This document shows, piece by piece, positions 8,840 through 47,180 of a stretch of 64,000 bases of DNA (within the stretch, counting starts at the first letter, position 1; the number at the start of each line of letters is the position of its first letter). The position numbers and the translations under genes are program-made. Location: NCBI GenBank assembly GCA_051530055.1, contig CM121342.1, positions 7,136,668-7,200,667 on the forward strand, in the 5' to 3' direction. Origin of the DNA: Neoechinorhynchus agilis. Its lineage: Eukaryota > Animalia > Acanthocephala. The notes under the pieces were generated by a model. The model had not been told where the DNA came from, did no database searches, and worked only from the letters and a program-made list of their open reading frames with translations.

Positions 8840-11800
8840 CTAAATGGTAGCAACGTAGGGGCTGGGTAAATCCGGCTGTGGATTATACGAGTATATGGAT
8901 GGAGTGTTACAAATTGAATTTTCTCTCCTCACGTTTTCCTCGCAACAGTTGATCCAAGGACTCAAATCAATGTCTTCGAGTGATTCACAACTCTGATAAT
9001 CATCAGGGAATCGAGATCTTATGAAGACATTTGCAGGAATTCGATCGATTGAATCACTGTTAGCGCAAATGATTCTCGCTAAGTTCGATTTCTTCACTTG
9101 TTTTAACTGGTCTTCACTAAATACTCCATCGTTTTCGTACCAAAACCTGTCTCCATTACGGATAGATTCAAACTGCTTTTTTAGAAGACATTGAAATAAC
9201 GGACCAATCCGACCATCACCAACACTGTCTTCGAGAATTCCACCAATCCAAACGTCCACGTTGTCTATGTTGCGATTCTTTTCTAAGCTATTGATCCTTT
9301 TTTTTTATGAAAAATTTGATTTTATTGTTAAGGTAAATGCCGTGTTTAATCCACATTTAACACTTTTACAATGACCCGCATCGGAATATATCTTAACAAT
9401 AAAATCCCTTCTAACCCAGATTATCATCACAATTAAAAATTTATCATCCCGTAGGATTTTCTCACTTGTGTGTCCATCGAAATGCAGCAACAAATGCTAA
9501 TCTCTGTATTTCAAACCGAAAAAGCAAAAAACGTCAAAGTATGATTAAATGGTGTACAAATCCCGGTTCTTATTAAAAAAAATTAAAAAGCCGTTCATAT
9601 TATCATTTTTTAATGACTTTAATAGTTTTGGAGCAATAATTGAGATTGTCTTGTTTTAATGAGTAGACTTACACAATTTTTAGTTTTCCATAGATTTTTT
9701 TTATGAGCTCCCCTCTCGGCTAGGCTCCAGTGGTTATATCTGCAAAACACTAGAAAAGGTTACGAACCCAAAGAAGACCTTGAGAGCTTTGAAAAATCGC
9801 AATTTACGTGCTTATATACCATCTCGAGTTTTTGTAAAACATTTCGATCTAAAATGACATCATTAAGCTCATCGAATTCCTTAATTGGTTTAAATCCACA
9901 AAACTGTCGATATTTTGTATAGGACGGTAAGCCATGATCTCGTCCTCTTTGAACATTTAAGGCAGCTAAATCTTGAGAGATTTCACGGATAATATTGAAT
10001 AAATGTTCTGTAAGTTCCGGATTGAGCATTTGTCCACTAACCTTTAGTTTTAAAGGTGCAGCAAACATTCCTCTGAGTAGCGGATCCGGCCCACCTTCCT
10101 CTAATAATCTCCAAGGAGAGAAAAAAGCGTCTCGTAGCATTATATTTCCTTGTTCTACAATGCATCATGATTACTTCGTTCTGAGAAGCCTTAGAAACAA
10201 TCATGTTGCAATTTATTGGTTCCAATGACGCATTTAATCTATATATTATTGGATTGATAAGAGTATGTCCGAATCTAAAGACGGCTGTTGCAATTACATT
10301 GACGCTGCTAGGATTCACGGAATCGTTATATCCACGATATGGCTCAATTTGAGTTCGTTTGCCCAGAATGAGAGGAAGCCAATGTTTGTAAGTAATGTGC
10401 TGCATCTGAGCACTAACGATTTTTCTAGTTTCTTGAAAGACTTGTTCGTCTGACCAATGTGGATTAAGATTGCCTAATTTCTCAGCAAGGCGATTATGTT
10501 GCCTGGCCCAGATTGTGTGCATGGCTGTAAGACCGAGTTGTTCACTAGCTCGATGATCCCCAGCCAAAAAACAACCGACTGGGCTTGCTCGAGCATCGCG
10601 GTCACGCTGACAGTCAACCGGAGTATCGACTGCAAATGGAAGTAATCGCTGCTTGTAACGATTATCCCTAAAATATCGAACAATTTAGTATGGTATCCAC
10701 TCAAATACAGACACTTACTTTCTCATTCTGAGAAGTCCTCGTCCATACGAATGTTCCCTCAAGTCATGTTGCTCTTGTTCAGTACTACCGTAAACATTTG
10801 ATGCATCAATGAAGGCAGTGATTTGATTGATTTGTTCTCGTTTTATTGGAACGCCGTTCAAAAGCGACGTTTCACCAGTCAAACAAACATCGGTCGATCT
10901 AAATGAGAGATTGAGGAAACATCGGTACGTGCTAGTTCAACTAACTTTACAAATTCAATACAATTTCCACGCTGTCCGATTCTTGGATCATCTTTCGGGA
11001 TCGATATCGGGTAACATGGAGCTTCTCGAGTACAGCTACTCACACAGAGTCTAGCATCACTGAAAGTATGAGTACCGGTGGCCATGAGTGTATGGGTGAA
11101 ATCATGATCAACGAATTGTCCCCATTGCATAATCATATGAGTGAAAGCCGGATCCGGAGTAATTCTTGGACTTGATATCAATTTCGACGATACAAGCCTC
11201 GGTGAAGGCAGTTGAAACCCGTTATGGAGCTTGGTTATGTTCCAACCTTTTGGTGTATTAAAGTTGTTGTCGTACTCAGATGGCAAATAACGTTCAAATG
11301 GAGTTTGAGATGCTCCCCACATTTTATGCTTAAGATTATTACATGTGCCATCAGCTGAACGGTATGATTGGCATTTTGATTTACAGTTCGCCGGGATGAT
11401 TTGGTGTGGAAAACATCCGGTTACAGTTGATAATCGTGTCAAATGTTGAGATGGAATACTCGGTGGACGTAAGTGTTCTGGTCGTGGAAGTTCCATTCGA
11501 TGTGCATTTATACCTTCCTCGATTTTCCTCCTTAGAATCCTCATCCCTTGTTCGTAGAAACGCTCAGCACTATCAATACTGCCCACTCCGATGGAGCCAC
11601 TCAACAGATTAGCTATAGCCTTCAAATCAAAAGGAAGCGTTTCGACAGCCAGGTCCTCGTAAGCAGTGAGTGTTATATTGTTACGAGATCGTTCTGCCTC
11701 CATTCTCATCTCTTTAAGATCATCAACATCAATATCATCAGCTCCTAAGAAAACAACATTTAAATGAACTACGGAAATCTCTATTGCCTTACTGATAATT

Positions 11801-13859
11801 TTCAAATTGAACGAGTGTTGATCCGTTCCGACTATATTCTCTACTATGCACATGTATCGACCAGAATCGCTTGAATGTGCTGAAGAAATTTTTAGGCTGC
11901 CATCGCTGAGAACACTTTTGCGGTTGTCGAATTCGATTGGTACATTGTCTTGGTACCAGCGGGTTAATGGTGATGGATAACCAGTGGAACTACATTCCAA
12001 CACGAATTGTTGACCCAGTCGTGCAGTGGTGTCTTTTTGTTTATGGGAGATAAATGGTGAAACTAAAAAAAACAATGGAACTTTAGATGTTTTGTAGGTT
12101 AGGTGAAAAACTTTCCATATCAATTTATCTTTTAAAATATAAAGGTAAACATATTTTTCGTATAAAGAAATTAAGTTAAAACTCTAAGAAAAAACGACGA
12201 TTCAAATAAAAGTCAAAAATTGCCTCATTTTCAGATCGAAAGTGAGAAAAGTCTCATCAATCCTTGGTTTTTTTAAGATCGCTTACCGGCCTCTTCAACT
12301 GATACTTGACAAGAAGCTTCATCCGAGCCCAATTTATTGGTAGCAATGCAAGTATAAAGTCCGTTGTGCTTACTATGTCATGATTTCTAAAATTTTAAAG
12401 TCAAAAAAAGAGAGAAATCATGGAATACGTGAAGCGTTAAAGAAACGAAGAACATGTGGATATGATTTAGTTGAAAGATACGATTCTCCTTCGATTATAG
12501 GATTTCCATTCTTTGTCCATTGTACTTGAGGTTTAGGAAATCCTTCAACATTGCACTTAAGAACGAAATCTGATCCTTGAACAGGAAAGATCGATCGCTC
12601 TTCGAATTCCACTGAGGGCTCAGCTATGTTGGTTTCAATAGAACCAAAGTAATAAACACATAAAAAATCTTACATTCAATAGACAATTTAACTGCAGCGC
12701 TTATATACTTGCGTCCTTTTAAAACTCGACAGGTGTAAAGTCCAATATCTTCGATTAAAATTGAATCGAACACTAGTCCACTGGCTGTCGTGTATACCCG
12801 TAAACTCGACTTTAGTGGTTTATCATCCTTTTTAAATTTAAAATAAGGTTTTCTTTACTGAGGATTGCATTCCAGTGGTTAAATATGTTATTATTTAGAT
12901 CTGTCTTCTACAGCCGAGAAGGATCATTAAAGACAAAAAACTTACAAACAATAGAATTGGTGTTTTTTTATTTAGGGCTGAAAAACTGAAGGAGTTTTAT
13001 TAAATCCCTCAACTGAAATATCGGATTTAATAAAACTCCCTCAATTTTTCCGCCATAATTATCAGCCGTGTGATAAAAGGCCACACATTGATAAACAATA
13101 GAATTGATAAAATGACTCTGGTCTTGAAAGCGATCTCTCTCTCGGTTGTTGTTGTTGACAAACGACCAAAATAATAACTAAAAATCAATGAAATTTGTTT
13201 AGTTACCTTTTGCCACTCCAATATATATGGATTATTAGGTGAACATGGAATTATTAGCTTATCTCCGATTCTGACGGACACTAATCTTGGTGGTCTTTCT
13301 TTAAACACAGAGTCAAATTCGTTGGTATACAATCGTTTTTTCCTAATGAGCATCTGACAAGGCTTTAGGTTGCTCACTTGTATTCCAGCTACGTCCGGAG
13401 GTGTACGGCAAATTCCTTCAACTCTGTCGATCGACCTTAAAAACCTCTGGAACCTTCGAAACAAGTAGCAGTCACAGGCAAGGTTTGAACCCAGGTTACT
13501 AAAAGTGAATTTAGTCCAAATAAAGTGTTCGTGAATATTTTACATGTTCTTTAAATTTGGGAATTGCTTGAACCAATTTGAGTTCGCGATTAGAGGTTCG
13601 CATCTTCTTAGATCCCTTCGAAAATGACGCTCATTTATGAGTACTTTTAAATCCTAAACTTACAAACTGTGAATTTTATCATCATAGATTTTATTTATCC
13701 AAGCTAGACATTGCCTATTTAGACATTCAATTCTATCGCCTTCGTATCGACAATGAGGAGATGACCAAGAGCCTTGTAGCAGCACACCAATCAAAATAAT
13801 GCCTATCTGATGTCGTGATTTATGAATTTTACCATTATCCAAGAGAATAACAAAATCAT
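8840..13859 (-). CDS. PXDN: Peroxidasin (signal peptide, short LRR region, Ig domains, animal haem peroxidase domain), multi-exon
   Basis: LRR-CT NLACDC..ICRTPPD; Ig C..W..G.Y.C repeats; peroxidase motifs [78 protein letters not shown]. Several canonical 26-51 nt introns reconstructed by eye, plus three TA/TIR inserts. Confidence 0.93.
12981..13049. repeat. Short inverted repeat (hairpin) in a peroxidasin intron
   Basis: ggagttttattaaatcc (12991-13007) and ggatttaataaaactcc (13023-13039) are perfect 17-bp reverse complements. Confidence 0.85.
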
Positions 13860-16798
13860 ACCATAGGGAAGAAGGTAAATCTTTTTTTACGCCCGTCTAG
13901 TTGCTTTGAGCTCTTCTTAAATATCTATCAAGCTTATCTGGATCTTGACGTCTGTCAGCTTGTCTCTTCAGCCGAAATTCAGCAATAGAATGCCTTCCAA
14001 TGAACAGTGACGGTCAACAACGAGCAGCCCTTGCGTCTCTCAGAATTCTTTAACCACTTTGTATAATGATTTAAATCACAATATCGAATGGATTATTGCA
14101 AAAAAAGCACCAAACACACAAAAGCTTACTTTAATATTCGTAGTTATTTTAGAAGTGTGCTCATTTTGAACGCGGATGAGTAATTGGTTTTCTGACGAAA
14201 AACAATGATTCCTTCATTCGTTAGTCTCCAAACTCGTTTGATCGAAAATGAAGCATTGATGTGAAAACGTTTTTACTTTTTAAAAAAAATCTTGGAGGAA
14301 AACTTTATCCGGCAAAAAATGCCTAGCCGTCCTCAATTGTCGCCCGAATGCTTGCCGTGTTGCCTCTCAACCAGCTATATTCCGATAAAGTTGACTGTTC
14401 CGAGTGATCCCGCCGAAATAATGGATAAACCAAACATTTTGGATGGTTGCAGAAAAATATGATGTGATCAGATAGCGATATGAGCGTCTTTAATTATGAT
14501 TTTTTTGAAATAATTATTGGAAATTGTGCATCGTTTATCATTTGCTAAAGTCGTCTAAAAATGAACAACGGAAAATCAAACCAAAACTGGTTCTAATCGC
14601 TACTTTAACTGTGCTTAAAGGTAATAAATATTCAGAGACAGAGTAGTTAAAAGATGTTTTCTTACAAAAATTAATTTGGCTTTCCTGAATATAGATTAAA
14701 TTGTTAGTTCAACGCAAAAAAAATATTTGATCATTATGTTTTGAATAGCAGTTTTAAATATTACCGCTGGTCTGTATTTGCTGATACAAAAAAGAAGTGA
14801 AAACTTCCTTCGCTTTCGTTCTTAAAAGCATATCCATCGTTCAAGACTTTTAAGAGCTTGATAACCAAGCTTCAATGCAGTGTTCATGAAGCAAGCGACC
14901 CATTGTTTTAATTTTGGTGAAAATACTAGAAATATTTCGCAGAGGAGGTAACCTCGCCTCATTAGTCATCTAAAAATATGTTTTTCCCATTCAAATATCT
15001 CAAATCAAATATGCTAACGATAATCTTTAAAAATTTGAACCTTTGATTTAAATAAAAAGAAGATAGAATTATGAAATCTACTATTGCTACTTAACATATA
15101 AATGATGATTCTCAAGTAACCGTAAAATTTGATTCCACTGATCTTTTCTCTATACCATCCTAGAGAATTGTGGATTCATGCTGAATGTCTACATTTTTGA
15201 AACATTTGGCTTAAAAGAATTGGTGTTTATTCTTCTCCAGGTCTCTGATTTTTCGTCTTTCAGTCAATCCATAATAAAAAGAAGGAAAATCAAGTAAACA
15301 ATCGCAAATACTATCAATGTTATTGTTGCTTTCCACTCATTATTCTGCGTCCTTAGGGTCTCTAACGGTGATTAGCGGCGGATACCTTGCTAATCAACCT
15401 TCAGATAATCTTACTCTGCATTCGAAATTTACTTCTTCGAAACGCCTCTTGAAATTATAAATCCTTTTTTTTGATTGTGTAAATGCAATCAACCGAGGAT
15501 TTTCCGTGATTGGAATATCCTAGCAAGTTTTATTTTTAAACCTTTTAATATCCAGAACACGCAAAGTGTTCAATTTTAATATTAATCATATCGAGAGAAA
15601 ATCCATCGGGATAATATAAGAAATTAGACCCATGTACCTTTGGGTTCCAGATTTTTTGGAATGTCCGTTCGAATGAGAATATGTCCGGTCGGGTTGGAAG
15701 GTCTTCGTTCTGGTGGGAATTTGTGGAATATTGTTTGCAGGAGGTGGGGTTGGTCTCCCAAATGAGCCAGACTCGGGAACCCAGGGGAGGAGGTAAGAAA
15801 TCATTTTATTGTTCGCAAAATATTTCGAAAAAGAGGAAACCTTCTCGCTTTATCAATCATTGTTTCGCAAGTTTGTCACTACGTTGAAGTGGCAAACTTT
15901 CGCGAAATATTTCAGAACAATCAAATGATTTTTAACCGAGTGATTATCTTCACCAAAGGTCAAAAATACATTTTTGAGTTATTGATCAAGTTTTTATTTT
16001 AAATCAGTACTCGGACGCCATCTTACGACTTCCTCGGGAATTTTTTTGGTTTCAATAATCATTGAGATTATTGCTGTTTAACCCTCGTTACAGAGATTTT
16101 TACTCCGTAAAAAGAAATCGCAGACTCAAAAATGCCAAATTCGGCTAGATTTTCACTTTATCTTCTTCTAACGCATTTTTCTGTTTCTCGACAGGTTGTG
16201 GTTCCTTCGACAACCAATTTATCCTGTTTTAGATTTTCCCTTTTTCATCATCATAGAAATATTTGTCTAAATTGACCACTCTACGTCTTCTAAAGCAAGT
16301 TAAAATTTGAAGTTTTAAACTGTTTTTTAGAATTTTTATATGTGGCTCAGCCGGTAGTCTTTTGATTAGATATTTTTTCCGGGACGAAATACCTCGCTGA
16401 AGGAGGAAACTCACTGAGTCCCGCCTCCTCGGGAGATTTCGGAGAATCCGGAGGGATTCATACAAACTCATTTACCGTACGATCTTGGAGCATTGAGCGC
16501 AGACCAGCGCTTCCCAGACCAATGAATCGGTGGACTGCGTGTGTCCATTCGGCCGTGTATGGAAAAAATATCTATAAACTGTATTTCATTGCTCAAAATA
16601 AGAACAATCAACGGTCTTTTAGTTTTTTTATCCATATACTACCACTGTTCCGCAACACTTGTCACATTTGATCAAACTTTTATAGCTAAACTTCTGTTAG
16701 ACTGATTTTCAAAAATAATAGCTTTTTAAAGAAGAGAAACTCAAGGCTTTTTAGCAACCTTTAACATACAAAAAAATGCGATTTGGAAATAAGTTGGA

Positions 16799-16961
16799 AT
16801 TATTGTTTAGAAGTCTTCATTCGCGGTGAATGATTTCTTTTCGATTAAAAAGACGTTCTGTGGACCTCGTCAACAATCCACAGAACTCGACGAGGTCCAC
16901 AGAACATCTTTTTAATCGAAAAGAAATCATTCACCGCGAATCAAGACTTCTAAACAATAAT
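16799..16961. repeat. Long near-perfect inverted repeat (~73-bp arms, 17-nt loop), MITE- or hairpin-RNA-like
   Basis: attattgtttagaagtcttcattcgcggtg...ctgtggacctcgtc pairs with gacgaggtccacag...caccgcgaatcaagacttctaaacaataat with 2 mismatches. Confidence 0.92.
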
Positions 16962-18244: not shown

Positions 18245-18540
18245 ATCACTGAGGTTGCTTTTCAAATACGGAAACGTTCAGCTTAAAATAATTAATCTTC
18301 AATGGGTTTTGTGGTCTCCGATATTTAAACTTACCGAATAATTAGAATTTTCTATCAGGCCACTTTTTAGAAATCTTTTTCTAATGAAAGGGAAATCTTC
18401 TGGACAATTGACTAAAAAGATCCCATTTAAGTTCAACGAATTTTAAATTAATTGATTCCGATTGATTTTAAAGGCACAATCTTCTCCATGCTTTTATCAA
18501 GAGTAATTTATTGAAGCTGCCGTCACAAAAACCGATTATA

Positions 18541-20850
18541 AGTCCAATATTTCGCGAAAACAAGGACAAACTTTGGGAAAATCATTCAAATTGAAATCCA
18601 AGGAGAATTTTTGTTATTAAAAGAAAATATTCTTCCTAGAACCCCGTCGTAGATCCATATAAAAACATGAACAATTCAATGTTTAGACACAAAAAAACGG
18701 TGTTTAAAGGTTGAACTTTTCTAATGTTTGTTTTTGTGGCGTAACTTGCAAAACAATCTTGTAAAAAGGCGTATAAAATTGTACCAAAAACAATCGGATT
18801 TAACCAAATTTTAAAATTTTACGCCACAAAACCTTAGAATAATTCAATTTTTAAACACCGTTTTTTATGTCTAAACATTGAATTAGGGAAAATCCTAGAA
18901 CTTAGTCTTCTTTCACTATTGTTCTCTTGAAAATAAGTCCAATATTTCGCGAAAACAAGGACAAACTTTGGGAAAATCATTCAAATTGAAATCCAAGGAG
19001 AATTTTTGTTATTAAAAGAAAATATTCTTCCTAGAACCCCGGCGAAGATCCATATAAAAAATGAACAATTCAATGTTTAGACATAAAAAACGGTTTTTAA
19101 AGCTCGAACTTTTCTAATGTTTGTTTTTGTGGCGTAACTTGCAAAACAATCTTGTAAAAAAGGCGTACAAAATTGTACCAAAAACAATCGGATTTAACCA
19201 AAATTTTAAAATTTTACCACAAAACCTTAGAATAATTCAATTTTTAAACACCGTTTTTTATGTCTAAACATTGAATTAGGGAAAATCCTGAACTTAGTCT
19301 TCTTTCACTATTGTTCTCTTGAAAATAAGTCAATATTTCGCGAAAACAAGGACAAACTTTGGAAAATCATTCAAATTGAAATCCAAGGAGAATTTTTGTT
19401 ATTAAAAGAAAATATTCTTCCTAGAACCCCGTCGTAGATCCATATAAAAACATGAACAATTCAATGTTTAGACAAAAAAAACGGTTTTTAAAGGTTGAAC
19501 TTTTCTAATGTTTGTTTTTGTGGCGTAACTTGCAAAACAATCTTGTAAAAAAGGCGTACAAAATTGTACCAAAAACAATCGGATTTAACCAAAATTTTAA
19601 AATTTTACGCCACAAAACCTTAGAATAATTCAATTTTTAAACACCGTTTTTTATGTCTAAACATTGAATTAGGGAAAATCCTAGAACTTAGTCTTCTTTC
19701 ATTATTGTTCTCTTGAAAATAAGTCCAATATTTCGCGAAAACAAGGACAAACTTTGGGAAAATCATTCAAATTGAAATCCAAGGAGAATTTTTGTTATTA
19801 AAAGAAAATATTCTTTCTAGAACCCCGTCGTAGATCCATATAAAAACATGAACAATTCAATGTTTAGACAAAAAAAACGGTTTTTAAAGGTTGAACTTTT
19901 CTAATGTTTGTTTTTGTCGTAACTTGCAAAACAATCTTGTAAAAAAGGCGTACAAAATTGTACCAAAAACAATCGGATTTAACCAAAATTTTAAAATTTT
20001 ACGCCACAAAACCTTAGAATAATTCAATTTTTAAACACCGTTTTTTATGTCTAAACATTGAATTAGGGAAAATCCTAGAACTTAGTCTTCTTTCATTATT
20101 GTTCTTTTGAAAATAAGTCCAATATTTCGCGAAAACAAGGACAAACTTTGGGAAAATCATTCAAATTGAAATCCAAGGAGAATTTTTGTTATTAAAAGAA
20201 AATATTCTTTCTAGAACCCCGTCGTAGATCCATATAAAAACATGAACAATTCAATGTTTAGACACAAAAAAAACGGTTTTTAAAGGTTGAACTTTTCTAA
20301 TGTTTGTTTTTGTGGCGTAACTTGCAAAACAATCTTGTAAAAAAAAGCATACAAAAATTGTACCAAAAACAATCGGATTTAACCAAAATTTTTAAATTTT
20401 ACGCCACAAAACCTTAGAATAATTCAATTTTTAAACACCGTTTTTTATGTCTAAACATTGAATTAGGGAAAATCCTAGAACTTAGTCTTCTTTCATTATT
20501 GTTCTCTTGAAAATAAGTCCAATACTTCGCGAAAACAAGGACAAACTTTGGGAAAATCATTCAAATTGAAATCCAAGGAGAATTTTTGTTATTAAAAGAA
20601 AATATTCTTTCTAGAACCCCGTCGTAGATCCATATAAAAACATGAACAATTCAATTTTTAGACACAAAAAAAACGGTTTTTAAAGGTTGAACTTTTCTAA
20701 TGTTTGTTTTTGTGGCGTAACTTGCAAAACAATCTTGTAAAAAAAAGCATACAAAAATTGTACCAAAAACAATCGGATTTAACCAAAAATTTTAAAATTT
20801 TACGCCACAAAAAAACCTTAGAATAATTCAATTTTTAAACACCGTTTTTT
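18541..20850. repeat. Tandem satellite C, ~395-bp unit, ~6 copies, each unit containing a ~210-bp MITE-like foldback
   Basis: agtccaatatttcgcg at 18541, 18936, 19328, 19722, 20116, 20516; internal inverted arms at 18673-18744 and 18819-18884. Confidence 0.96.
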
Positions 20851-24886: not shown

Positions 24887-27301
24887 ATGTCAAATTCAAA
24901 ACGACCCCGTGAAGGAGGTGAACAAAGAGATGAAAGTTCCGCACCAATTTTAAAACGCCCGAAATTTGACCGAAGATTGCAACGATGGTATTATACATTC
25001 TCAGTCACGTCGAAGCCAGTGCAATTGGAGATGATGCGTTGCATACTAAGGAATCATTGTACGAATGAGCAACTTAAGGAGCTAAGGGAGACTATTGATT
25101 CTTTGCTCAAATGCGACTTCTTTTCACACCTTCCTCTCGATGTTTGCCTTCGAATTCTCGATTCGTTATCAAACGAGGATCTATTGCGACTTAGTGGAGC
25201 TTCGTATTCCCATCGTCGATTGGTGATGGTTGAAGGTGGAGGATTGTGGCTTGAACGGTATCTGAACCAAAAGTTCGAGTTTTATGCTCCATGGAGTGCA
25301 TGTAGTCGATCTTTGGAACTTTACGATAATCAGTTGCGATCGGCTGTAATGGGCGAAAAGATGTCTTATGGATTAATGGTACGATTAATGGCAGAACGAA
25401 TTTTAAGAACCTCGTGGAAATTCGGAACAGATACGCAGTTGTGAGATGAAGAATTCAAGGATCTTTTTTTGTTTATTATGCGCACGAAGGACATTTCGTT
25501 AGAGTTTTATGTTTTCATTTTTCACAATCTTTATGTGTTATCTCGCTTAGGAATGAGTCTCTTGATCATTCTTTGGCCAAAAAGGACGACTGAGAACGCC
25601 CAGTATCACAACGTTTTTGAATTTCTAAACCGTTTTGAATTATATCTATGATTTACTCTACTTTATCCATGGACACATGCACTTGCTACTTGATCGCGAG
25701 GTTTTGGACGTTCCTTTTAGTTAATAAGAATTATAGAAAGCCAATACTTTTTTCGAACAAAAGTGACTTGAAAAGTGTTCTTACTTTTTTTACGAGCAGA
25801 AATCATTTGCACCACCGTCCCTCTGGATCACTTCGGTGCTTTCCTGGTGTAAGGGTCGAACTCGGATCGCCAGTGATTGGTCTCAGTTTCTTTGGCAATC
25901 ACTTGACCCGAATACCTATTCTTTTTGCGTTCCTCAGCGTCAATTGCTGCTCCGCTCCCCGACTTAATAGAAACCAATTTCATGATTCGTGGAACCATTT
26001 TTTGTGGGTTTTTTTTAAACTTTTTTTTCACATTCAGCCTTTTTTTTGTTTCTCACAACTACTTTAATCCCGATGCGATCAAAGTTCATCCAGCTCACGA
26101 CGAGCACGTGATCACATGTTTGATGTTCGACGGTCGATACACAGTGACCGCATCCGACGATACTCTCATAAGAGTATTTCCGCGCAAACGGGATCCATTC
26201 GCACTTTCCGGTCACCAAGGCGGCGTTTGGTGTGCCGAGTTGCAATATCCGTACATTTTCAGTGGAAGTACCGATCGAAGCGTAAAGGTTTGGCATATTC
26301 CTACCCGAAGATGTATTTCCAGCTTAAGAGGACACGTTTCAACTGTTCGATGTCTCAAGACTGGGATTCCATGGGGAAAGCACTGGATTGTGACTGGGAG
26401 TCGAGATCAGACCATACGAGTATGGCAATTGATACTTGGGACAAACCAAGACAACAGGTATTTAGTGTATACTTCTGCCTATTGCCTCCATGTATTGACC
26501 GGTCACATTGGAGCGGTAAGATGTCTCGGTATGAGTAGTGAATATATTGTAAGTGGAGCATATGACAACGACGTACGGATTTGGAAGATTGATCAAGACA
26601 TGGTTCGAACTTATTCAGTGCTTAGAGGACATACCAACCGCGTCTACTGTCTACAATTCAATGGAACAATGATTGTGAGTGGTTCAATGGATGCGACGAT
26701 ACGGCTATGGGATGTTGCTGATGGAACATGTCTTCATGTTCTATCTGGCCATGACTCTCTTATAAGCCATCTTCTATTAATCGGTCGTCATTTATTCAGC
26801 TGTAACGCTGATAAAACTGTAAAGCTTTGGAATGTCGAAACCGGAACTAACATTTACACCCTAGATGGACCTAATGCACACACGGCTTGTGTAACCTCAG
26901 TAGCCGTCAATCGAGCGTTTGTGCTTACTTGTGCTGATGATGGAAAACTAAAGCTATGGGATGGGAAAACAGGGATATTCATTAGAGATCTTTATCAGAT
27001 ACAAGCCCAAGATGCTCCAGGATCTATGTGGTCAGTTCTTTGTACCGAATCAAGAGTGATTTGTGTTGGTGGAAGTCGTGGTGCTCGTGATGACTCTTGT
27101 ATTATCGATGTGGACCTCAGTTCGGACGCCAAAGCTTATCTAGAAAATCAAGGACTCGTGGAAGATACAAAGAAACGAAATGTCGATATGTCCTTTTTAC
27201 CGTGCCCCATTCAAGACGAGGAAAAGAGTTTGTGGATGGAAGATCCACTTTGTTGGCTTATTGGACCGCTAGCCCAAAATGACCCACTCTTCACTCTCTA
27301 A
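24887..27301 (+). CDS. FBXW7: F-box/WD40 protein of the FBXW7/Sel-10/Archipelago type; two coding blocks separated by insert 25438-26059
   Basis: F-box DFFSHLPLDVCLRILDSL; WD repeats HDEHVITCL, GHQGGVW, GSTDRSVKVW, GHVSTVRC, GSRDQTIRVW, GAYD, GHTNRVY, GPNAHTACVT follow FBXW7 order. Confidence 0.87.
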
Positions 27302-28595: not shown

Positions 28596-28722
28596 ATAGC
28601 TCCATCTTGTCGATGAATAATCGCACGAAATTTTCGCTTCGTCTACTTTGAAAAGGTAGGTTTTGCTTGCCATAAAACAACGCATCACACATTTGAACAG
28701 AAACTTGGTCTCCGTATAAAGG

Positions 28723-29853: not shown

Positions 29854-31889
29854 TTATTTTTTACGTCCACGTTTCTTGAACGTCCGCATTGACTTCATAG
29901 TGAAAGTAACACACAATTCATCCATGATTTTCATCAGATCTTTTTTACTCATTTTCAAATGAGCATTTACAACAGCATGAAATTCTTCAATGTCGACTGG
30001 TTCGTACATGAGAATCTTCCTGTACCACACGGAATCGATTTTACATCTAATCGTGTCAACTAATGCCGTTCGTCTTTGTTCCAGACTTCCACTTTTATCT
30101 TCATGAACGCTCGATTCCAACAAGAACGACATTTCTGCTACAGAAGCTCGCAGTTCGCGTCGATGCACCGACGATTGCTTCTTGTTGTGGTTAAAAACAT
30201 AATCAGATCGCTCGTTTCGTGGGACGTGAGTTCCCATAAATACCTCTTTAAGCTTCGCTATCATCTTAACTCGCGTAAATGGTTTTAGACCAAACTTTGC
30301 CATTTCAGCTTTTAACTGATCAATACTCATCGATTCGAAATCCGGCATTGGGCTTTCGATTATAGACGTCTCGGCCGTTGTCAATTGCTTCGTTGGAGTG
30401 AAAGATCGAATGGGAGTTGATGTTAAATGACAGGATTGAGGGATTAACGGCGGTGAATCATCGCTGACTTTTACTATAGACCGCGTTGAATTGTGGTGGA
30501 AAGACTCACATTCACGGAAATCGATCCATACATCGTGGTCGTCCTCGTTTCTCGTCTCATCAATGACAATCATGCTCAAAGATTCTTTATCGTGTATTAA
30601 ATTAAAATCAGACTTTTCTTGAATACTCAGATTCACCGCTTGTTCGCATATGGATACTGTTGATTCAATACGCTCCGAAATTTCATGTAATTACCAATGT
30701 CCAAAATTCGTTTTAGTCGTAAGAAAAAGACGATTGGTACGAAATATTCTAATTAAATCCGTCTCACTTAAATTTTGGACAAAAGGTATTATAATTGTTG
30801 TTCACTACTTGAAATGGAATTCAGCAGATTTTTTTCAATTTTTTTGATAGGCGAAGTGCGCGAAATGTCCGATATTCCAAGATCGAAGGGCGTAAGATTT
30901 AGTGAAATCAACTCGTGGCGATGTTCAAAAAGTTCATTCGCTTCCACGGGACTACAAACGAGACCTAAAGATTTCTCCAGTCTCTCATCTCCAAGATGTT
31001 CATAAGTAAGTTCATTTTTTTCGTTGTCCATTGGAGGTTTTTGATCAGATCGACATTCTTTATTGTCGAAACTTTTGACGCTTCCATCAATGCCAATTAA
31101 TTCTATTTCATTATTGACAAAATCCTTCTTATAATCAGGAGTAAGGTTCGCCTGTTCAGCACCATCTACTTTGATTTCTTGTGAAAGACCGCAAAATCTC
31201 CGATCTAAACTGTCCAAAATATTGACAGGATCACATTGTGATGCTTTGGACCACCATCTTGTAGGCGTTCTTGGAATGCGACTAATTTTACCATTATCAC
31301 ACAAATCATCCTCAGCTGTCAGGATTTCAGTCAAAATCCGAGCAGCCGGACTATCGTGTTCAGTTTGAGCTTGATGAAGCTCACAATTAACGGTTGATGG
31401 CCGTTTTCGTGATCGCTGGAATGTCGCGATATCCTCATCTGCCAATCCTTGCTTTCTAATTACGGCTACCATCGTCTTAGGATGAATCCGATTCCGTTTT
31501 CCACAAGATCTCTCATGTTCAAGAATCTGAAGAAATGCTCCTCCACAAAACGAGCATACACTCAATTTCTCAGCATCATTCACATTTAGACATTTGTCAA
31601 CATGCAATTGACGGGCATTCAGACTAAATGAACTCAAGTCCCGCTTACAAATTGGACAGGTTATTTTCTCAGCAACAACACCGTATTTTGTGATCTGATG
31701 ATCGCTTCTGAAGTGTTTCAACGACTCAAACTTACCCTTACGACCTGATCTTTTCGTCCTTATCGACTTACTCTCATGTTTCGTCGTAGTTTCCGTCTCA
31801 AGTGTTGTTGACCGATGAGAAACTTTAACTTTTTTCTTCATCCGGTCAGTGATGTCGTTGAAATCGACGAATTCGGAATCGGACGACAT
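29854..31889 (-). CDS. SLX4: SLX4-like structure-specific endonuclease scaffold; two coding blocks separated by insert 30690-30791
   Basis: N-terminal UBZ4-like CPICKRDL...RQLHVDKC; SAP-like PMPDFESMSIDQLKAEMAKFGLKP..KMIAKLKEVF..TH; SLX1-binding WYRKILMYEPVDIEEF...LCVTFT. Confidence 0.85.
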
Positions 31890-33725: not shown

Positions 33726-34604
33726 GTTTTGAAGCTCAAGTGTTCATTTTTAAATTTAATGCGTCCTGGAGAATTTCTATTATCATCTCATCAAAAAATT
33801 GATTGCAAATAAAATCATTTTAATTTCTTTGCCAAGAAAACAACCTGATTTAAAAAAAAGAATTTGGAAAACAATATTGATCAAAGCAGAAATGGTCAAC
33901 AAAAAGTTTTCATGATTTTGTTTATGAAAAACAGATAGAAGCACACAACATCGTGAGTATAAAAGGACCCCTCGATACGTTCACTCAATGATTAATCGCG
34001 TCGGATTCGTTTGGTCCGTTTCGTAAACACTCGGTCCTTTTTACGTCATTAATTTGAATTCTTCCTGATCGTAACACTTCGGTACTTCTTCATTTATCCG
34101 CCGTCAAATGGTTTATTGTTCCGATCATTTGTCCTTGAGTTTTTGTTTCGGAAATCTATGAATGCCATCAAATAGCCGCCGTATTCTTACACGTTTTCGT
34201 GATTGGACTTTACCAATATTGATTTAATAGATTTTTTGTTTTAAAATAATGATCTTGATGAACTGCCATTTGTCACGGCGGTGTCTCTTCTAAAATGTCC
34301 GTGATTTAAACGTCATTTCGACGAATTCTTCCCGATCGTCCGGTCAACGTCGTCTCGACGTAATCATCTTTCAAGTTTGAAACCTGCGTCTTTCATCGGG
34401 TTTTGAAAATTTTCATTTTTCCAAAGTTAGCGATTTTGTTTGGTTCCTGATCTTTTTTGTATTTCGAAATGTCCGTAGAAATTGCGGTTTTCACTAAGAA
34501 CGAGGAATAACATTTTGGAGATGAGTGGTATCTTCAACTCAGGGATTATTAGGGATTTTAATCTTGTCCTGGCCACAGTATCTCTTTTCTCGAAGATTTA
34601 TTTC

Positions 34605-35425
34605 TTTTGTTCCTCAACGGAAAGATTGCAAAAAAATGGCCAAAAATTTATTTGAGATTGAAGTCTCCTTCTGAGCACCAAAGAAAATAAGTTTTCTGCC
34701 ATTTAAATATTCCCAAATCTTCGTATTTCTTTTTTTGAAAAGATTTAAGAACCTGATCATTGTTAAATACACAAAAGTTAACTCGAAGATTTATTTGGGG
34801 TTTCAATCATCTAACAAAAAATGGCCAAAAATTTATTTGAAATTTAAGCCTCCTTCTGAGCACCAAAGAAAATAAGTTTTCTGCCATTTAAATATTCCCA
34901 AATCTTCGTATTTCTTTTTTGAAAAGATTTAAGAACCTGATCATTGTTAAATACACAAAAAGTTAACCCGAAGATTTATTTCGTTTGTTCCTTAACGAAA
35001 AGCCGGTTTTCAATCATCTAACAAAAAATGGCCAAAAATTTATTTGAAATTTAAGCCTCCTTCTGAGCACCAAAGAAAATAAGTTTTCTACCATTTAAAT
35101 ATTCCCAAATCTTCGTATTTCTTTTTTTGAAAAGATTTAAGAACCTGATCATTGTTAAATACACAAAAAGTTAACTCGAACATTTATTTTAATTGTTCCT
35201 CAACGGAAAAAAAGGGTTTTCAATCATCTAACAAAAAAAGGCCTAAAATTTATTTGAAATTGAGGTCTCCTTCTGAGCACCAAAGAAAATAAGTTTTCTA
35301 CCATTTAAATATTTCCAAATCTTCGTATTTCTTTTTTTGAAAAGATTTAAGAACCTGATCATTGTTAAATACACAAAAAGTTAACTCGAACATTTATTTT
35401 AATTGTTCCTCAACGGAAAACCCGG
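34605..35425 (-). repeat. Satellite E right array, same family in inverted orientation, ~4 copies
   Basis: tattcccaaatcttcgtatttc and ttctgagcaccaaagaaaataag are reverse complements of the left-array unit. Confidence 0.95.
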
Positions 35426-35499
35426 TTTGGAATCTTTTTTTAAATCCAAAAAAGATCCATAATTTTGCCTCGAATCTCTCACCTAAAAAACATTATTAG

Positions 35500-37972: not shown

Positions 37973-38363
37973 TTACGCGACAGATTGGGCACATGAAGCG
38001 ATTTTGGGCCACAGGTCAGCGCATTCTTTAGCCACAGGTCCAGTAATGGCTGATCCTTTCATTTCTCCTTTTTCATTGACGATAACTCCTGCATTATCTT
38101 CAAAATAAATGAAAGTTCCATCTTTTCGTCTATAAGGTTTTCGTTGACGGATAACAACGGCCAACAGCACTTTTTTCCTCAGTTCCGGTTTTCCCTTTTT
38201 CACGGTAATCATGACGAGATCTCCAACACAAGCGGCCGGTAGACGATTGAGCCTAGCGCCCCATCCTCTGACGCTAATGATGAACATATTCTTAGCTCCA
38301 GTGTTATCGGCGCAATTGATGACGGCACCACTCGGTAGACCTAGAGATATCCGATACTTTTTA
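37973..38363 (-). CDS. RPL23: 60S ribosomal protein uL14 (RPL23); start codon and first exon not found
   Basis: [24 protein letters not shown]...[10 protein letters not shown]...[10 protein letters not shown]...[33 protein letters not shown]. Confidence 0.92.
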
Positions 38364-38738
38364 TCCGAGATTCGCGAGATCCCGTTGGTGTGATCGAATT
38401 TTCAAGAAGAAGATAAGGAATAGATCGCTCGCCTGAAAAAATTAGTGAAAATGTATTCTGCATCAACTTTTATGTTTTGTTCGTCACTTCCCTATGGATT
38501 ACTAATATTCGACCAAACGATTAGGAATTTATTGGTAATGATCACAATCTAAATGGAACCACGGCTCCTCCAATTCGTAAGCCGTTCGCTATTCAAAGCG
38601 AAAGAATTCATGAAAAAAGACGGTCCTATGCTCAAAAATGGGCCCATCGTTTACGTTTCAGCGATTCAACGTCCAATGCTTTCGTAGCTTTAAGAATCGG
38701 GAGATATTGATTTGACGATTTCTCGCTTTTCTCTCTAT

Positions 38739-39620
38739 CGCTATTTCATATTTCTCCCTTTACTCAAATTCATTTGAAGGAATCTTTAAGTTCTTTTTGG
38801 GAAATCATTAAATAGATTTTACCGATATTCAATTTGTTTTCAAAGAAAAATCACACTTTAATGTTTCTCTTTCAAATTTGAACTTCTCGCTATTTCATAT
38901 TTCTCCCTTTACTCAAATTCATTTGAAGGAATCTTTAAGTACTTTTTGGGAAATCCTTAAATACATTTTACCGATATTCAATATGTTTTCACGAAAAATC
39001 ACACTTTAATGTTTCTCTTTCAAATTTGAACTTCTCGCTATTTCATATTTCTCCCTTTACTCAAATTCATTTGAAGGAATCTTTAAGTTCTTTTTGGGAA
39101 ATCATTAAATAGATTTTACCGATATTCAATATGTTTTCATAGAAAAATCACACTTTAATGTTTCTCTTTCAAATTTGAACTTCTCGCTATTTCATATTTC
39201 TCCCTTTACTCAAATTCATTTGAAGGAATCTTTAAGTTCTTTTTGGGAAATCATTAAATAGATTTTACCGATATTCAATTTGTTTTCAAAGAAAAATCAC
39301 ACTTTAATGTTTCTCTTTCAAATTTGAACTTCTCGCTATTTCATATTTCTCCCTTTACTCAAATTCATTTGAAGGAATCTTTAAGTTCTTTTTGGGAAAT
39401 CATTAAATAGATTTTACCGATATTCAATTTGTTTTCATAGAAAAATCACACTTTAATGTTTCTCTTTCAAATTTGAACTTCTCGCTATTTCATATTTCTC
39501 CCTTTACTCAAATTCATTTGAAGGAATCTTTAAGTTCTTTTTGGGAAATCTTTCTCGATATACAATATTGTTTTCATGGAAAAATCACACTTTAATGTGT
39601 GTTTCTCTCTCTCAAATCTG
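38739..39620. repeat. Tandem satellite F, 149-bp unit, ~6 copies
   Basis: cgctatttcatatttctccc at 38739, 38888, 39036, 39185, 39334, 39483. Confidence 0.96.
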
Positions 39621-39711
39621 AACCGTTGAATACTAATATTCGTCCAAAAAAGAAGTTTTCTTAATAGATATCGACTAAAAGTACTTTGGTTTTTAGATAC
39701 GATTATTTCAG

Positions 39712-40060: not shown

Positions 40061-40121
40061 TTTTTAATGTTGTCAAAAATATCTTTCCCAAACCCCATTA
40101 TTTGCAGATAAATTTTCCGCT

Positions 40122-43100
40122 ATGATCGCTCAAATCGTTCGATTTTCTTCTCGTGAATTATTTCTTCACCCTCATCGTTTGCTTGCTTCGGCTGCGGGCA
40201 CACGACCGCCTCCTCCTCCTCCGATGGCGAAAAAGCTATTTCAAAGGGATAAACCCCATGTTAATGTTGGAACCATTGGTCACATCGACCATGGAAAGAC
40301 TACACTCACATCAGCGATCACATTTGTTTTGAACAGAGAGAAAATGGCAGATTTTCGGTCTTATGAGGATATTGACAAAGCTCCAGAGGAACGGAAACGG
40401 GGAATCACCATAAATGCGACTCACGTCGATTACAGTACTAATAATCGACACTATGGCCATGTTGATTGTCCTGGTCATGCGGATTATATTAAAAATATGA
40501 TCACAGGAAGTTCTCAAATGGACGGTGCAATCCTTGTTGTCGCTGCTACTGATGGTGTAATGCCACAAACTCGTGAACATTTACTTCTTGCAAAACAAAT
40601 CGGTGTAGATCGTGTTGTCGTTTTCCTCAATAAAACCGATAGCGCCGATGAGGAAATGATCGAGTTAGTCGAAATCGAACTACGTGAACTTTTACATGAT
40701 CTTGGATTTTCTGAAGATGTTCCCATTGTCAAAGGATCAGCTTTGTATGCTTTGAAAGAAAAGGAAGATGACGGACAAGGTAAACGGGCAATACATGAAT
40801 TACTTGAAGCTGTCGATTCTTATATCAACGAACCTAAAAGACAATCCGACAAAGATTTTTTAATGCCGATTGAACATGTCTATGGAATAGAAAATAAAGG
40901 TACTGTGGTCAGTGGAAAGGTGCTAAGAGGAACGTGCAAGAAATCAGATTCAATGGAGGTTGTCGGCTTTGATAAAGTGTATAAAACAGTCATAAATGGA
41001 CTTGAAATGTATCATCAAACTGTCGAAAAAGGACTTCCTGGTGATCAATTGGGCGTTTTGATTAAAGGAGTCAAAAGGGATGCCGTCCGACGAGGAATGT
41101 GCCTCGCTAAGATGGTTCATCTGATCACAACCATTCAACTGCTTTCGTTTTTTTTGAAATCCAATCGCTTCACATAAAAACATGAACATTTTCCTAAAAT
41201 TCATTTTCCCATACAGAATTTTTTGTCGTAGAATCTTAAGGATCTAAAATAACAAACTGCAATATTTAATAGGTTTAACTTCGATGCGTTCTTTTAGTTC
41301 GTTGTTTTTCATGTGAGCGGTTGGTTGTTGGATTGTCGACTGATTTCTTAACCGCATGTTGTTTTTCGTTTCAATTGTCATTTTATTTAAGTAATTTCCG
41401 CGGTTGAAACAAATGTATTCTTGTTGTTGTGTAGTGGCGACAAAATTTTTGTAAATTTATTAAATCGATCTTTCGGCTCAATCAAGGGCACAACGTATGC
41501 AAAGACAATCTTGATAAAGGCTCTGGATTGATCCGAATCGAAAAATTTACATAGTTTTTGTCGCCACTACACATCAATCATGAGCAGTTCATAGCGATCA
41601 TTTTTATAGTTTGAATCTCAACCTTCTGCACTAATAGAAAACAGTAGAAACAATCTTGATAAAGGCTCTGGATTGATCCAAATCGTTAAATTTACATAGT
41701 TTTTGTCGCCACTACACATCAATCATGAGCAGTTCATAGCGATCATTTTTATAGTTTGAATCTCAACTTTCTGCACTACTAGAAAACCGTAAAAACAATC
41801 TTGATAAAGGCTCTGGATTGATCCGAATCGATAAATTTACAACTAATGAGCAGTTCATAGCGATCATTTTTATAGTTTGAATCTCAAATTTCTGCACTAA
41901 TAGAAAACAGTAGAGACAATCTTGATAAAGGCTCTGGATTGATCCGAATCGATAAATTTATAATTTTTGTCGCCACTACACATCAATCATGAGCAGTTCA
42001 TAGCGATCATTTTTATAGTTTGAATCTCAACTTTCTGCACTAATAGAAAACCGTAAAAACAATCTTGATAAAGGCTCTGGATTGATCCGAATCGATAAAT
42101 TTACAACTAATGAGCAGTTCATAGCGATCATTTTTATAGTTTGAATCTCAACTTTCTGCACTAATAGAAAACAGTAGAAACAATCTTGATAAAGGCTCTG
42201 GATTGATCCGAATCGATAAATTTACATAGTTTTTGTCGCCACTACACATCAATCATGAGCAGTTCATAGCGATCATTTTTATAGTTTGAATCTCAACTTT
42301 CTGCACTAATAGAAAACAGTAACAATCTTGATAAAGGCTCTGGATTGATCGAATCGATAAATTTACAAATCATGAGCAGTTCATAGCGATCATTTTTATA
42401 GTTTGAATCTCAACTTTCTGCACTAATAGAAAACCGTAAAAACAATCTTGATAAAGGCTCTGGATTGATCCGAATCGATAAATTTACATAGTTTTTGTCG
42501 CCACTACACATCAATCATGAGCAGTTCATAGCGATCATTTTTATAGTTTGAATCTCAACTTTCTGCACCACTAGAAAACCGTAAAAACAATCTTGATAAA
42601 GGCTCTGGATTGATCCAAATCGATAAATTTACATAGTTTTTGTCGCCACTACACATCAATCATGAGCAGTTCATAGCGATCATTTTTATAGTTTGAATCT
42701 CAGCTTTCTGCACTACTAGAAAACCGTAAAAACAATCTTGATAAAGGCTCTGGATTGATCCGAATCGATAAATTTACATAGTTTTTGTCGCCACTACACA
42801 TCAATCATGAGCAGTTCATAGCGATCATTTTTATAGTTTGAATCTCAACTTTCTGCACTACTAGAAAACCGTAAAAACAATCTTGATAAAGGCTCTGGAT
42901 TGATCCGAATCGATAAATTTACATAGTTTTTGTCGCCACTACACATCAATCATGAGCAGTTCATAGCGATCATTTTTATAGTTTGAATCTCAACTTTCTG
43001 CACCACTAGAAAACCGTAAAAACAATCTTATAAAGGCTCTGGATTGATCCAAATCGTTAAATTTACATAGTTTTTGTCGCCACTACACATCAATCATGAG

Positions 43101-43840
43101 CAGTTCATAGCGATCATTTTTATAGTTTGAATCTCAACTTTCTGCACTAATAGAAAACAGTTGAAACAATCTTTTAAAGGCTCTGGATTGATCCAAATCG
43201 TTAAATTTATACAGTTTTTGTCGCCACTACACATCAATCATGAGCAGTTCATACCGATCATTTTTATAGTTTGAATCTCAACTTTCTGCACTACTAGAAA
43301 ACAGTAGAAACAATCGTGATAAAGGCTCTGGATTGTCGCCACTACGCATCAATCATGAGCAGTTTCACTTTTAAATAGATGTCTTTGGACCGAATAAAAA
43401 TTCTCTCTCTCTAAAAGTTACACTGGATATCCTAATGATTTTTGTCAAATTAAAAACTCAGCAATTCTTCGATAGACGACCAGATAATCATCAATAAACC
43501 ATCTAGTATAAAATCATTCAATCATATCAAAGCCCAGATTTATACCCTTACACCCAATGAAGGGGGCCGAGACACTCCAATAGGATTCTTGGACCGTCTT
43601 ACTCTTTACTCGTTGACATGGAATGTGGATGCGAAAGTGAAGATCAATGAAGAATTGGAACCTTCACGTCAAATGATATTACCTGGTGAAGATGCTCATG
43701 TTGAAGTTGCATTTAGACGAACTCTTCCACTTGAGGTAGGACAACGGTTTACGCTTAGAGATGGATCTTTTACCGTTGGTACTGGTTTGATAACTCATAC
43801 ACTGGAGCCGATAGAGCAGTTGGAATTCAGGAAATTGTGA
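40122..43840 (+). CDS. TUFM: Mitochondrial elongation factor Tu; exon 1 40122-41109, insert 41110-43494, exon 2 from about 43497
   Basis: Presequence; [44 protein letters not shown]; exon 2 [46 protein letters not shown]. Confidence 0.93.
41506..43365. repeat. Tandem satellite G, ~145-bp and ~121-bp unit variants, ~14 copies, inside the EF-Tu insert
   Basis: caatcttgataaaggctctgg at 41506, 41651, 41796, 41917, 42060, 42181, 42323, 42443, 42588, 42733... Confidence 0.96.
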
Positions 43841-47100: not shown

Positions 47101-47180
47101 GATAATGAAGGATGTTCGTCTCAAAATTGAAACGAGAATAACTCGAGAACCATGATAGCTATCCCGAAAATGAAATTAGG

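Follow-up and report, generated by a model that had tools for sequence, protein, structure and literature searches.

In a 64-kb stretch of chromosome CM121342.1 of the acanthocephalan Neoechinorhynchus agilis, a parasite of fish, six inserts interrupt the coding sequences of peroxidasin (three inserts), FBXW7, SLX4 and mitochondrial EF-Tu. It is well supported by the sequence that they are TA-duplicating inverted-repeat DNA elements, similar to miniature inverted-repeat transposable elements (MITEs) or foldback elements, which landed in exons that were once continuous. The affected genes are single-copy in N. agilis, and the conservation of their proteins would require that the inserts are removed precisely, or nearly precisely. 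Our best reading, which we judge to be about as likely as not, is that this happens in the RNA and that the inserts act as non-canonical introns, a stem bringing their two ends together. The window is the whole stretch of 64,000 nt that was analysed; adding 7,136,667 to a window position gives the position on CM121342.1 (16.4 Mb, assembly GCA_051530055.1).

The inserts are numbered along the window, and their boundaries are given as plus-strand positions. Three of them lie in the peroxidasin gene (8843..13896, minus strand; Pfam An_peroxidase and immunoglobulin (Ig) domains). Insert 1 (537 nt, 9268–9804; CM121342.1 7,145,935–7,146,471), placed between TA at 9266–67 and TA at 9805–06, and insert 2 (56 nt, 10158–10213; 7,146,825–7,146,880), between TA at 10156–57 and TA at 10214–15, interrupt the peroxidase domain, and insert 3 (50 nt, 12376–12425; 7,149,043–7,149,092), between TA at 12374–75 and TA at 12426–27, interrupts an Ig-domain exon. 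Each of the other three separates two coding blocks of its gene. Insert 4 is found in FBXW7 (24887..27298, plus strand; F-box-like and WD40), insert 5 (102 nt, 30690–30791; 7,167,357–7,167,458; TA at 30688–89 and 30792–93) in SLX4 (29857..31889, minus strand; Pfam Slx4), and insert 6 (2385 nt, 41110–43494; 7,177,777–7,180,161; TA at 41108–09 and 43495–96) in mitochondrial EF-Tu (40122..43837, plus strand). All six are present at the positions and with the lengths given in the initial annotation, and in all six the removal of the insert plus one TA brings back the reading frame, as had been proposed. The initial annotation had described five inserts as TA/TA and insert 4 as CA/TA, with 622 nt (25438–26059) between CA at 25436–37 and TA at 26060–61. 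This holds for the five, but insert 4 can equally well be drawn as 631 nt (25434–26064; 7,162,101–7,162,731) between TA at 25432–33 and TA at 26065–66, and both versions restore the frame. No flanks matching a longer target-site duplication (TWA, TTAA or 5–9 bp) were found at the inserts. The reported coexistence of the inserts with ordinary GT-AG introns of 31–379 nt in the same genes was borne out.

To describe the pairing of the ends, the first 32 nt of each insert were aligned locally with the reverse complement of the last 32 nt. The repeat of insert 1 has 18 matches in 20 columns with a single gap of 2 nt (beginning at +3/+3 relative to the flanking dinucleotide), those of inserts 2 and 3 have 11/12 and 10/10 matches (both +4/+4), and insert 4 has either GTTGTGAGA (9/9 at +1/+1) or AGTTGTGAGA (10/10 at +4/+5). 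Insert 5 has 11/11 matches at +11/+9, forming an inner 11-bp stem, TGTCCAAAATT, with an outer 4-bp stem, TACC/GGTA, and insert 6 has the weakest repeat of the six (13 matches in 16 columns with one gap, +2/+3). The hairpin of insert 2 has a fold energy of −14.4 kcal/mol. Compared with 1500 random, distance-matched TA pairs, the end-anchored repeat score is 8–11 for every insert except insert 6, against a null of 2.4 ± 1.3 (p ~0.001–0.008 each), and 5 for insert 6 (p 0.07), while the duplex energies of the insert ends range from −14.7 to −19.6 kcal/mol, against −7.3 ± 3.2 kcal/mol. Eight GT-AG introns, from peroxidasin and from a WDR1-like gene of the window, have repeat scores of 1–4 and energies of −4.7 to −11.2 kcal/mol, and none of the eight reaches the level of the inserts, a comparison close to one that the initial annotation had named as a way to disprove its reading. 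By end pairing, the inserts and the GT-AG introns of the same genes are distinct classes. The terminal inverted repeats reported earlier are thus above the null in five of the six inserts and weak in insert 6, and the statement that they lie within 1 nt of symmetric fails for insert 5.

Across the window, TA-repeat-TA pairs of the same threshold are no commoner than expected by chance, and TA flanks show no excess there over other flanking dinucleotides. The significance of the pairs therefore rests on their coincidence with the frame-restoring sites and not on the motif, which was dropped as a stand-alone detector. An automated test of ORF (open reading frame) joining did not discriminate either, with 213 hits versus 182 and 196 in the frame-shift controls. 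In inserts 1 to 3 and in the TA/TA version of insert 4 the repeat begins 3–5 bases inward of the TA and the outermost bases do not match; in non-coding TA-flanked palindromes at 16801–16958, 32505–32637 and 9323–9400 the repeat directly abuts the TA. The mismatch of the outermost 2–3 bases in the exonic inserts is notable, but the sample is too small to call it selection.

Near-perfect, foldback-like palindromes with TA flanks and lengths of 75–205 nt are also seen in the non-coding DNA of the window, at the three places just given and at 16367–16573, 15794–15933 and 12969–13060. One of them lies inside the canonical 379-nt intron of peroxidasin and another, the 75-nt hairpin at 9323–9400, is nested in insert 1. 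Most of them, contrary to the exonic inserts, have an inverted repeat that directly adjoins the TA.

The peroxidasin gene has GT-AG introns at 10668–10718, 12063–12286, 12624–12673 and 12828–13206, and its catalytic residues are intact. On the sense strand, insert 1 reads ..AAG CAC GTA/AATTGCGAT...ATCGCAACATA/GAC AAC.. (KHV/DNVDVW, with the slash marking the junction). After its removal, positions 444–447 of the Pfam An_peroxidase profile run across the junction without a gap (KHV/DNV). The junction is also gap-free relative to LPO (YKTPDNIDIW), where the stretch opposite the joined flanks is YKTPDNIDIWIGG, and the exons end at residue 152 and resume at residue 153 of the homologue P0132, and at residues 599 and 600 of the homologue P0130. 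For insert 2, with the sense strand ..CCA ATA/AATTGCAACATGATT..AATCATGATGCATTGTA/GAA CAA.. (LEPI/EQGN), the profile passes from position 331 to position 336 over the junction and agrees to about one residue with the TA-type join, which is predicted to read ..GGAACCAATA/GAACAAGG... Its exons end at residue 33 and resume at residue 34 of P0132 (LEPISEGN), and at 482 and 483 of P0130, and the spacing across the insert differs from that of MPO by one residue. Relative to the two homologues and to MPO, LPO and EPO, the junctions of inserts 1 and 2 are gap-free, for insert 2 to within one residue of the PDB spacing, and the earlier claim that removal yields consensus-like residues in peroxidasin is upheld. 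As insert 2 lies within the catalytic domain, it cannot be bypassed by exon skipping. Insert 3 reads ..CGTA/TTCCATGATTTCT..AGAAATCATGACATA/GTAAGC.. (FFNASR/SKHNGLYTC), and its TA-type join would be ..CTTCACGTA/GTAAGCAC... Positions 2–63 of the Ig_3 profile are matched upstream of it, and the Y-x-C-x-A-x-N motif follows downstream only in the frame restored by the removal of 52 nt.

Insert 6 sits between domains II and III of EF-Tu (LA/KPSS), and its core (41501–43335) is a tandem array with a period of ~145 bp. Over its first coding block, the gene matches the NCBI protein ACOME3_006313 of N. agilis, which is the deposited model (P0001), with 100% identity. The distance between the RRG and EGG motifs of EF-Tu is 25 residues in 113/113 homologues, and the TA-type removal of insert 6, which would join ..GCCTCGCTA/AACCATCT.., also gives 25. 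In the deposited model (ATG/GTTCAT...CCCAG/) this spacing is 13, found in no other of the 114 EF-Tu sequences; 13 residues that are conserved in P. laevis are dropped, and the first position of EF-Tu domain III according to Pfam is inside the dropped stretch. The other GT-AG option, which keeps the conserved residues, results in a spacing of 31. The TA-type join alone yields the invariant spacing, which bears out the expectation of a consensus-like EF-Tu, and, judged by these sequences, the deposited annotation mis-models the protein. The orthologue of P. laevis is a single uninterrupted, intronless ORF, and no second N. agilis EF-Tu was present among the database hits.

The junctions of inserts 4 and 5 are not fixed by homology. 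Insert 4 separates the F-box part of FBXW7 from its WD40 part, and the PDB alignment begins 16 residues downstream of the junction (the WD40 part matches human FBXW7 structures, 1e-87). Insert 5 is within SLX4 at QQL/HEIS, where the surrounding region is unconserved, so that homology cannot decide. The only intron that reproduces the deposited length of 603 aa is a 224-nt GT-AG intron (GTAGTG at 30808 to AAG at 30585), which would remove 41 codons of the open frame flanking insert 5 on its two sides.

The TA flanks, the inverted ends and the restored ancestral sequence form together the footprint of a TA-targeting inverted-repeat transposon, which establishes the origin of the inserts but not the mechanism of their removal. 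Stowaway-type MITEs and foldback elements have TA target-site duplications and terminal inverted repeats, and are small, AT-rich, non-coding and able to form hairpins. The inserts share the TA duplication and the inverted repeats (9–18 matching bases), but differ in that the repeats start 2–11 nt inside the TA in most of them, and 50–56 nt is unusually short for such an element. Common end motifs hint that the three peroxidasin inserts are related to each other: inserts 1 and 2 start with the same octamer, TA followed by AATTGC (9805–9797 and 10215–10207), inserts 2 and 3 (12425–12413) have the stem core CATGATT in common, and AATTGCGATT of insert 1 equals AATTGC[AACAT]GATT of insert 2.

No further stop or frameshift is seen in ~3.9 kb of coding sequence, the intron phases are correct, the frames are open, and the exons are 50–72% identical to those of relatives. 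The assembly (46.2 Mb) is an Illumina and Oxford Nanopore Technologies (ONT) hybrid, polished, made from a DNA pool of ~50 worms and annotated with BRAKER2. The inserts of such a pooled consensus are majority alleles and not rare ones, and, with the genes otherwise intact and this EF-Tu the only one detected, the removal would have to be precise or nearly so. Precise removal fits six of the six inserts with one explanation, while conventional splicing needs a separate story for each and leaves insert 2 unexplained.

In the mechanism that we propose, each element and one of its two TA copies would be cut exactly from the pre-mRNA, in the manner of a non-GT-AG intron. Its inverted repeat would fold at the ends into a stem that brings both cut sites next to each other, the genes would keep their function because the elements are removed exactly, and the GT-AG introns of the same genes would be spliced conventionally. 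Candidates for the machinery are a relaxed spliceosome, as in the tunicate Fritillaria, or a different system, as is suspected in Euglena. The proportion of complete eukaryotic BUSCOs (Benchmarking Universal Single-Copy Orthologs) is higher in the N. agilis transcriptome (71.0%) than in the genome (58.4%), an indirect hint consistent with gene models that are broken by non-standard interruptions.

In layout, the inserts are closest to the nonconventional introns of euglenids. Those of E. gracilis and E. agilis follow the genetically defined scheme 5'-N3CDG...CH'GN5-6/R, with a strict 5' spacer of 3 nt and a 3' spacer of 5(-6) nt (PMC12501133). When the intron is taken as the insert plus the downstream TA, and the spacers are counted to the first stem pair, the 5'/3' spacers are 3/5 nt in inserts 2 and 3 and 3/6 nt in insert 4 (TA/TA version), which is exactly the Euglena layout. 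Insert 1 (2/4 nt) and insert 5 (3/4 nt, outer stem) are near it, and insert 6 (1/4 nt) is off. The next exon base is G after inserts 1, 2 and 3, A after inserts 4 and 6, and C after insert 5, a purine in five of the six. Other likenesses are the absence of GT-AG ends, a terminal inverted repeat that joins the ends and is by supposition MITE-derived, junctions with short direct repeats, a length range of tens to thousands of nucleotides, and the presence of conventional introns in the same genes. The differences are that TA flanks are not euglenid and that the host is an animal and not a euglenozoan. The removal of the euglenid type from RNA yields a circular intron product.

Several points weigh against removal at the TA guided by a stem. 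The CAG/CTG pairing (C-D-G/C-H'-G) that defines the Euglena introns is absent, the stems starting with TGC/GCA, CAT/ATG, TTG/CAA, AGT/ACT, TACC/GGTA and GATG/CATC, and the only sequence signal common to the six inserts is the TA. The 3/5 geometry is partly arithmetic, because a symmetric repeat lies 3 nt inside a 2-nt duplication, and it reduces in part to a TA and about three mismatched end bases. Any insertion with a target-site duplication restores frame and consensus automatically when it is taken out, which is no proof that the cell cuts at the TA; we infer the TA-type boundaries of removal from the sequence. Likewise, the end pairing can be inherited from the transposon rather than selected. 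For this reason the argument of the initial annotation, in which conservation lies in the pairing and not in the sequence and the splice sites are consequently defined by an RNA stem, does not follow, since transposon origin alone explains inverted ends. The repeat of insert 5 is offset and that of insert 6 is degenerate. Related copies, as expected of a mobile family, were not seen in the window: inserts 1 to 5 have no second copy there, and insert 6 matches there only its own 145-bp tandem array and a 35–40-nt stretch at 27638–27677. Without insert 3 its exon has 285 nt and phase 1-1, which makes exon skipping possible, and inserts 1, 4, 5 and 6 have in-frame GT-AG alternatives.

To obtain these alternatives, every GT-AG or GC-AG removal that keeps the frame and is free of stops was listed up to 60 nt from either end of each insert. 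They would allow a role for the conventional spliceosome, acting on introner-like or cryptic GT-AG sites, with insert 3 skipped together with its Ig exon and insert 2 making peroxidasin a null or hypomorph, which we consider unlikely. Removal of transposons through cryptic sites occurs with Tc1 in C. elegans and Ds in maize. The donor of the insert 1 option (CAC/GTAAAT...GAAAAG/) resembles the canonical donors of the window, insert 4 has a strong option (GTT/GTGAGA...pyrimidine tract-CAG/, with TTTTTTTTCACATTCAG/ as the acceptor), the deposited EF-Tu model uses one of the two options of insert 6, and the 224-nt intron around insert 5 matches the length of the deposited SLX4 product. However, the insert 1 option puts 3 extra residues into a place without gaps in five homologues, that of insert 4 adds 9–10 residues (FLFFVSHNY), turning a poly-T tract into FLFFV, and the several options of insert 5 come only with the deletion of unconserved residues. 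Both EF-Tu options (+6 aa or −12 aa net) break the spacing that 113/113 homologues keep, and with one of them the first strand of domain III is lost. For inserts 2 and 3 no option is acceptable, as all delete profile-matched residues, and insert 2 is thereby left without a route inside the catalytic domain of an otherwise intact gene. A different story is needed for each insert.

It is quite improbable, in our estimate, that the inserts are germline-limited sequences cut from somatic DNA at the TA, the assembly representing germline DNA or DNA rich in embryos. This idea draws on the internal eliminated sequences (IESs) of Paramecium, which interrupt coding sequence, have TA boundaries of which one TA is left, are often very short and are thought to descend from Tc1/mariner elements; they are removed from the DNA of the ciliate macronucleus by a domesticated piggyBac transposase and have the end consensus TAYAGYNR. 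The inserts agree with IESs in their TA at both boundaries, in the exact restoration that leaves one TA, and in their coding location. They have no splice-site consensus, the members of 50 and 56 nt are hardly more than a hairpin, and the DNA was prepared from whole worms, including females full of embryos. Yet TAYAGYNR is not found in the next six bases of the inserts (the ends are AATTGC, TTCCAT, CGCAGT, TAATAC and AGATGG), and their outermost 2–3 bases are mismatched, which runs counter to the usual requirement of a transposase-type nuclease. Chromatin diminution is undescribed for Acanthocephala in the literature searched; to our knowledge, precise excision on such a scale occurs in ciliates only, and we know of no diminution in Acanthocephala. 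More improbable still is that the inserts are not removed at all, being disruptive transposon insertions in pseudogenes or tolerated null alleles. Extensive gene loss is reported for acanthocephalans, three inserts fall in one gene, and no removal of an insert has been observed. Against this, four genes are hit, including the only detectable mitochondrial EF-Tu, with open frames, right intron phases, catalytic residues and conserved exons free of any further lesion, in a consensus of ~50 worms that does not represent rare alleles. In addition, the degenerate repeat of insert 6 and its 1.8-kb tandem expansion suggest an old insertion in a gene that is still intact. Finally, ordinary introns with ends that pair by accident, or assembly artefacts, are a most improbable explanation: comparable TA-repeat-TA pairs do occur at chance frequency in the window, but here they are found at all six frame-restoring intervals (p ~0.001–0.07 each) and in 0/8 canonical introns, the TA flanks coincide exactly with the frame-restoring points, and the hybrid assembly was polished.

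Four further processes were considered and rejected. The 5' ends of the inserts (/ATTGCG, /ATTGCA, /ATGGTT and /GTATTCC), examined against the /RTATCCTT donor and the TCCTTAAC branch site, are unlike those of U12-type (AT-AC) introns. Translational bypass, of the T4 gene 60 or mitochondrial byps type, is impossible at 537–2385 nt. In tRNA-type bulge-helix-bulge splicing two 3-nt bulges stand 4 bp apart, and the unpaired bases of the inserts form instead an internal loop. The paired stem-loop motifs of IRE1-type splicing are absent.

A broader possibility, which we hold as doubtful, is that TA-bounded hairpins are excised with single-base precision under the guidance of structure and independently of their letters, by a non-spliceosomal system or a heavily modified spliceosome, in RNA or in DNA. 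If true, the RNA form would be convergent with, or the same as, the euglenid machinery, and the DNA form would be an IES-like somatic elimination. Either form would open the exons of essential genes to colonisation by transposons in a genome of 46 Mb.

In host type and origin, the inserts most resemble the introns of Fritillaria borealis. Non-GT-AG introns are described for this species and other tunicates (Henriet et al. 2019; PMC13326754); those of Fritillaria have preferred AG-AC or AG-AT ends after an exonic TAC, and ~95% of its introns are non-canonical. Both hosts are animals with compact genomes, a MITE origin is indicated by inverted repeats and target-site duplications, and GT-AG introns persist at old positions. 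The species-specific position of the Fritillaria introns has a parallel in EF-Tu, the one gene compared with P. laevis, by the intronless orthologue of that species together with the TA duplication and the inverted repeat. In contrast, AG-AC or AG-AT ends after TAC are found in 0/6 inserts in any TA register, as read from the printed insert ends (both pairs are outside the list of 14 terminal-dinucleotide pairs used for in-frame removal), and GT-AG introns are the majority in the N. agilis window. The defining sequence feature is therefore missing with respect to both the euglenid and the Fritillaria introns.

Introners, described in Micromonas, Aureococcus, dinoflagellates and Amoebophrya, are multi-copy families of DNA transposons, mostly with GT/GC and AG ends; the survey found them in two animal groups only and does not mention acanthocephalans or rotifers (PMC11282704, PMC9860276). 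The inserts share with them the origin from an inverted-repeat transposon insertion with target-site duplication and, on the proposed reading, its conversion into an intron; in introners the duplication may supply one splice site, and the introns of Amoebophrya are largely non-canonical too. They differ in that inserts 2 and 3 have no GT-AG route, and in that the available pairs of inserts 1 and 4 to 6 add or lose residues.

If transcripts confirm the removal at the TA, Acanthocephala would stand beside the appendicularian tunicates among the animals in which non-GT-AG introns derive from transposons, and would be the first animal lineage with a euglenid-like stem geometry and no conserved terminal dinucleotides. 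This bears on the birth of introns from DNA transposons and on the machinery for structure-defined introns. RNA-seq data of 74 N. agilis worms are public (PMC12690905). Introns are never mentioned in the genome paper of N. agilis or its companion paper, and the literature searched yielded no account of non-canonical introns in either Acanthocephala or rotifers. The deposited annotation allows canonical introns only, and it truncates other genes besides mis-modelling EF-Tu, so that the massive gene loss of acanthocephalans is possibly inflated in part by an annotation artefact. As an extrapolation only, 6 inserts per 64 kb would scale to thousands in a genome of 46 Mb.

Homologue searches with a peroxidasin piece and with the reverse-transcriptase ORF of a LINE-like (long interspersed nuclear element) element found no relatives among acanthocephalans, and a search among representative sequences brought up no match of 100%. 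The P. laevis locus L001, which consists mostly of transposons, yielded no usable multi-exon gene. The collections searched contained no transcripts, reads or insert-free alleles of N. agilis, and EF-Tu and HDAC1 have no N. agilis record there beyond the NCBI assembly. A metagenome scan with the exon-2 sequence gave no match, Rfam and tRNA scans of the window gave no hits, and the 311-aa ORF at 7677–8609 has no database record.

The window also contains genes for a Bin3-type methyltransferase, HDAC1 (without introns), RPL23 (37976–38760, minus strand) and the WDR1-like (WDR1/AIP1-like) protein (43909–45734, minus strand). The deposited WDR1-like model (306 aa, 44290–45288) stops at an in-frame TGA. 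The apparent in-frame double stop of this gene was considered as a seventh insert, but it is explained by a 75-nt GT-AG intron (GTCGGA...CACAAG, 44345 to 44271), which would join a further WD40 exon of 123 aa. The upstream exon, starting with RFGHVF, adjoins a 202-bp tandem array (45625–47104) whose units repeat the last 17 nt before the exon. The RPL23 ORF extends from YRISLGLP to the stop, and the deposited model of 131 aa has an internal Met as its start. A search of 1.8 kb upstream revealed neither an ATG nor a first exon (MSKRGRGG-like); trans-splicing, a distant first exon past the 149-bp array, or another unusual intron are possible explanations.

The LINE-like element (48656–52289, minus strand) has reverse transcriptase, endonuclease-like and gag-like ORFs and is partly annotated as a 382-aa gene; its reverse transcriptase has no relative at E<=1e-10 in a search of 5.8 billion proteins. 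Two inverted-repeat structures are present. One, at 32655–35434, consists of opposed arrays with units of ~185–210 bp and arms of up to 277 nt that are 93–98% complementary. The other, at 61197–63752, is a 2.5-kb element with arms of at least ~245 nt, enclosing ORFs that resemble a retroelement pol fragment, of which the ORF at 62442–62804 has no Pfam match. A kinase-fragment array (54680–60580, plus strand) has ~10 tandem copies with a period of ~543 bp (HGDLKLGNIM...YYRAPEM...), and its last copy runs on into the rest of the C-lobe (Pfam Pkinase positions 120–196). Much of the intergenic DNA is filled by satellite-like arrays at 1–5989, 6632–7462, 18538–20852, 21910–24902, 27796–28596 and 38738–39550, with periods of 157, 147, 394, 139, 266 and 149 bp, respectively. 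The 139-bp array, as delimited by Tandem Repeats Finder (TRF), extends to 24902, just beyond the ATG of FBXW7 at 24887.

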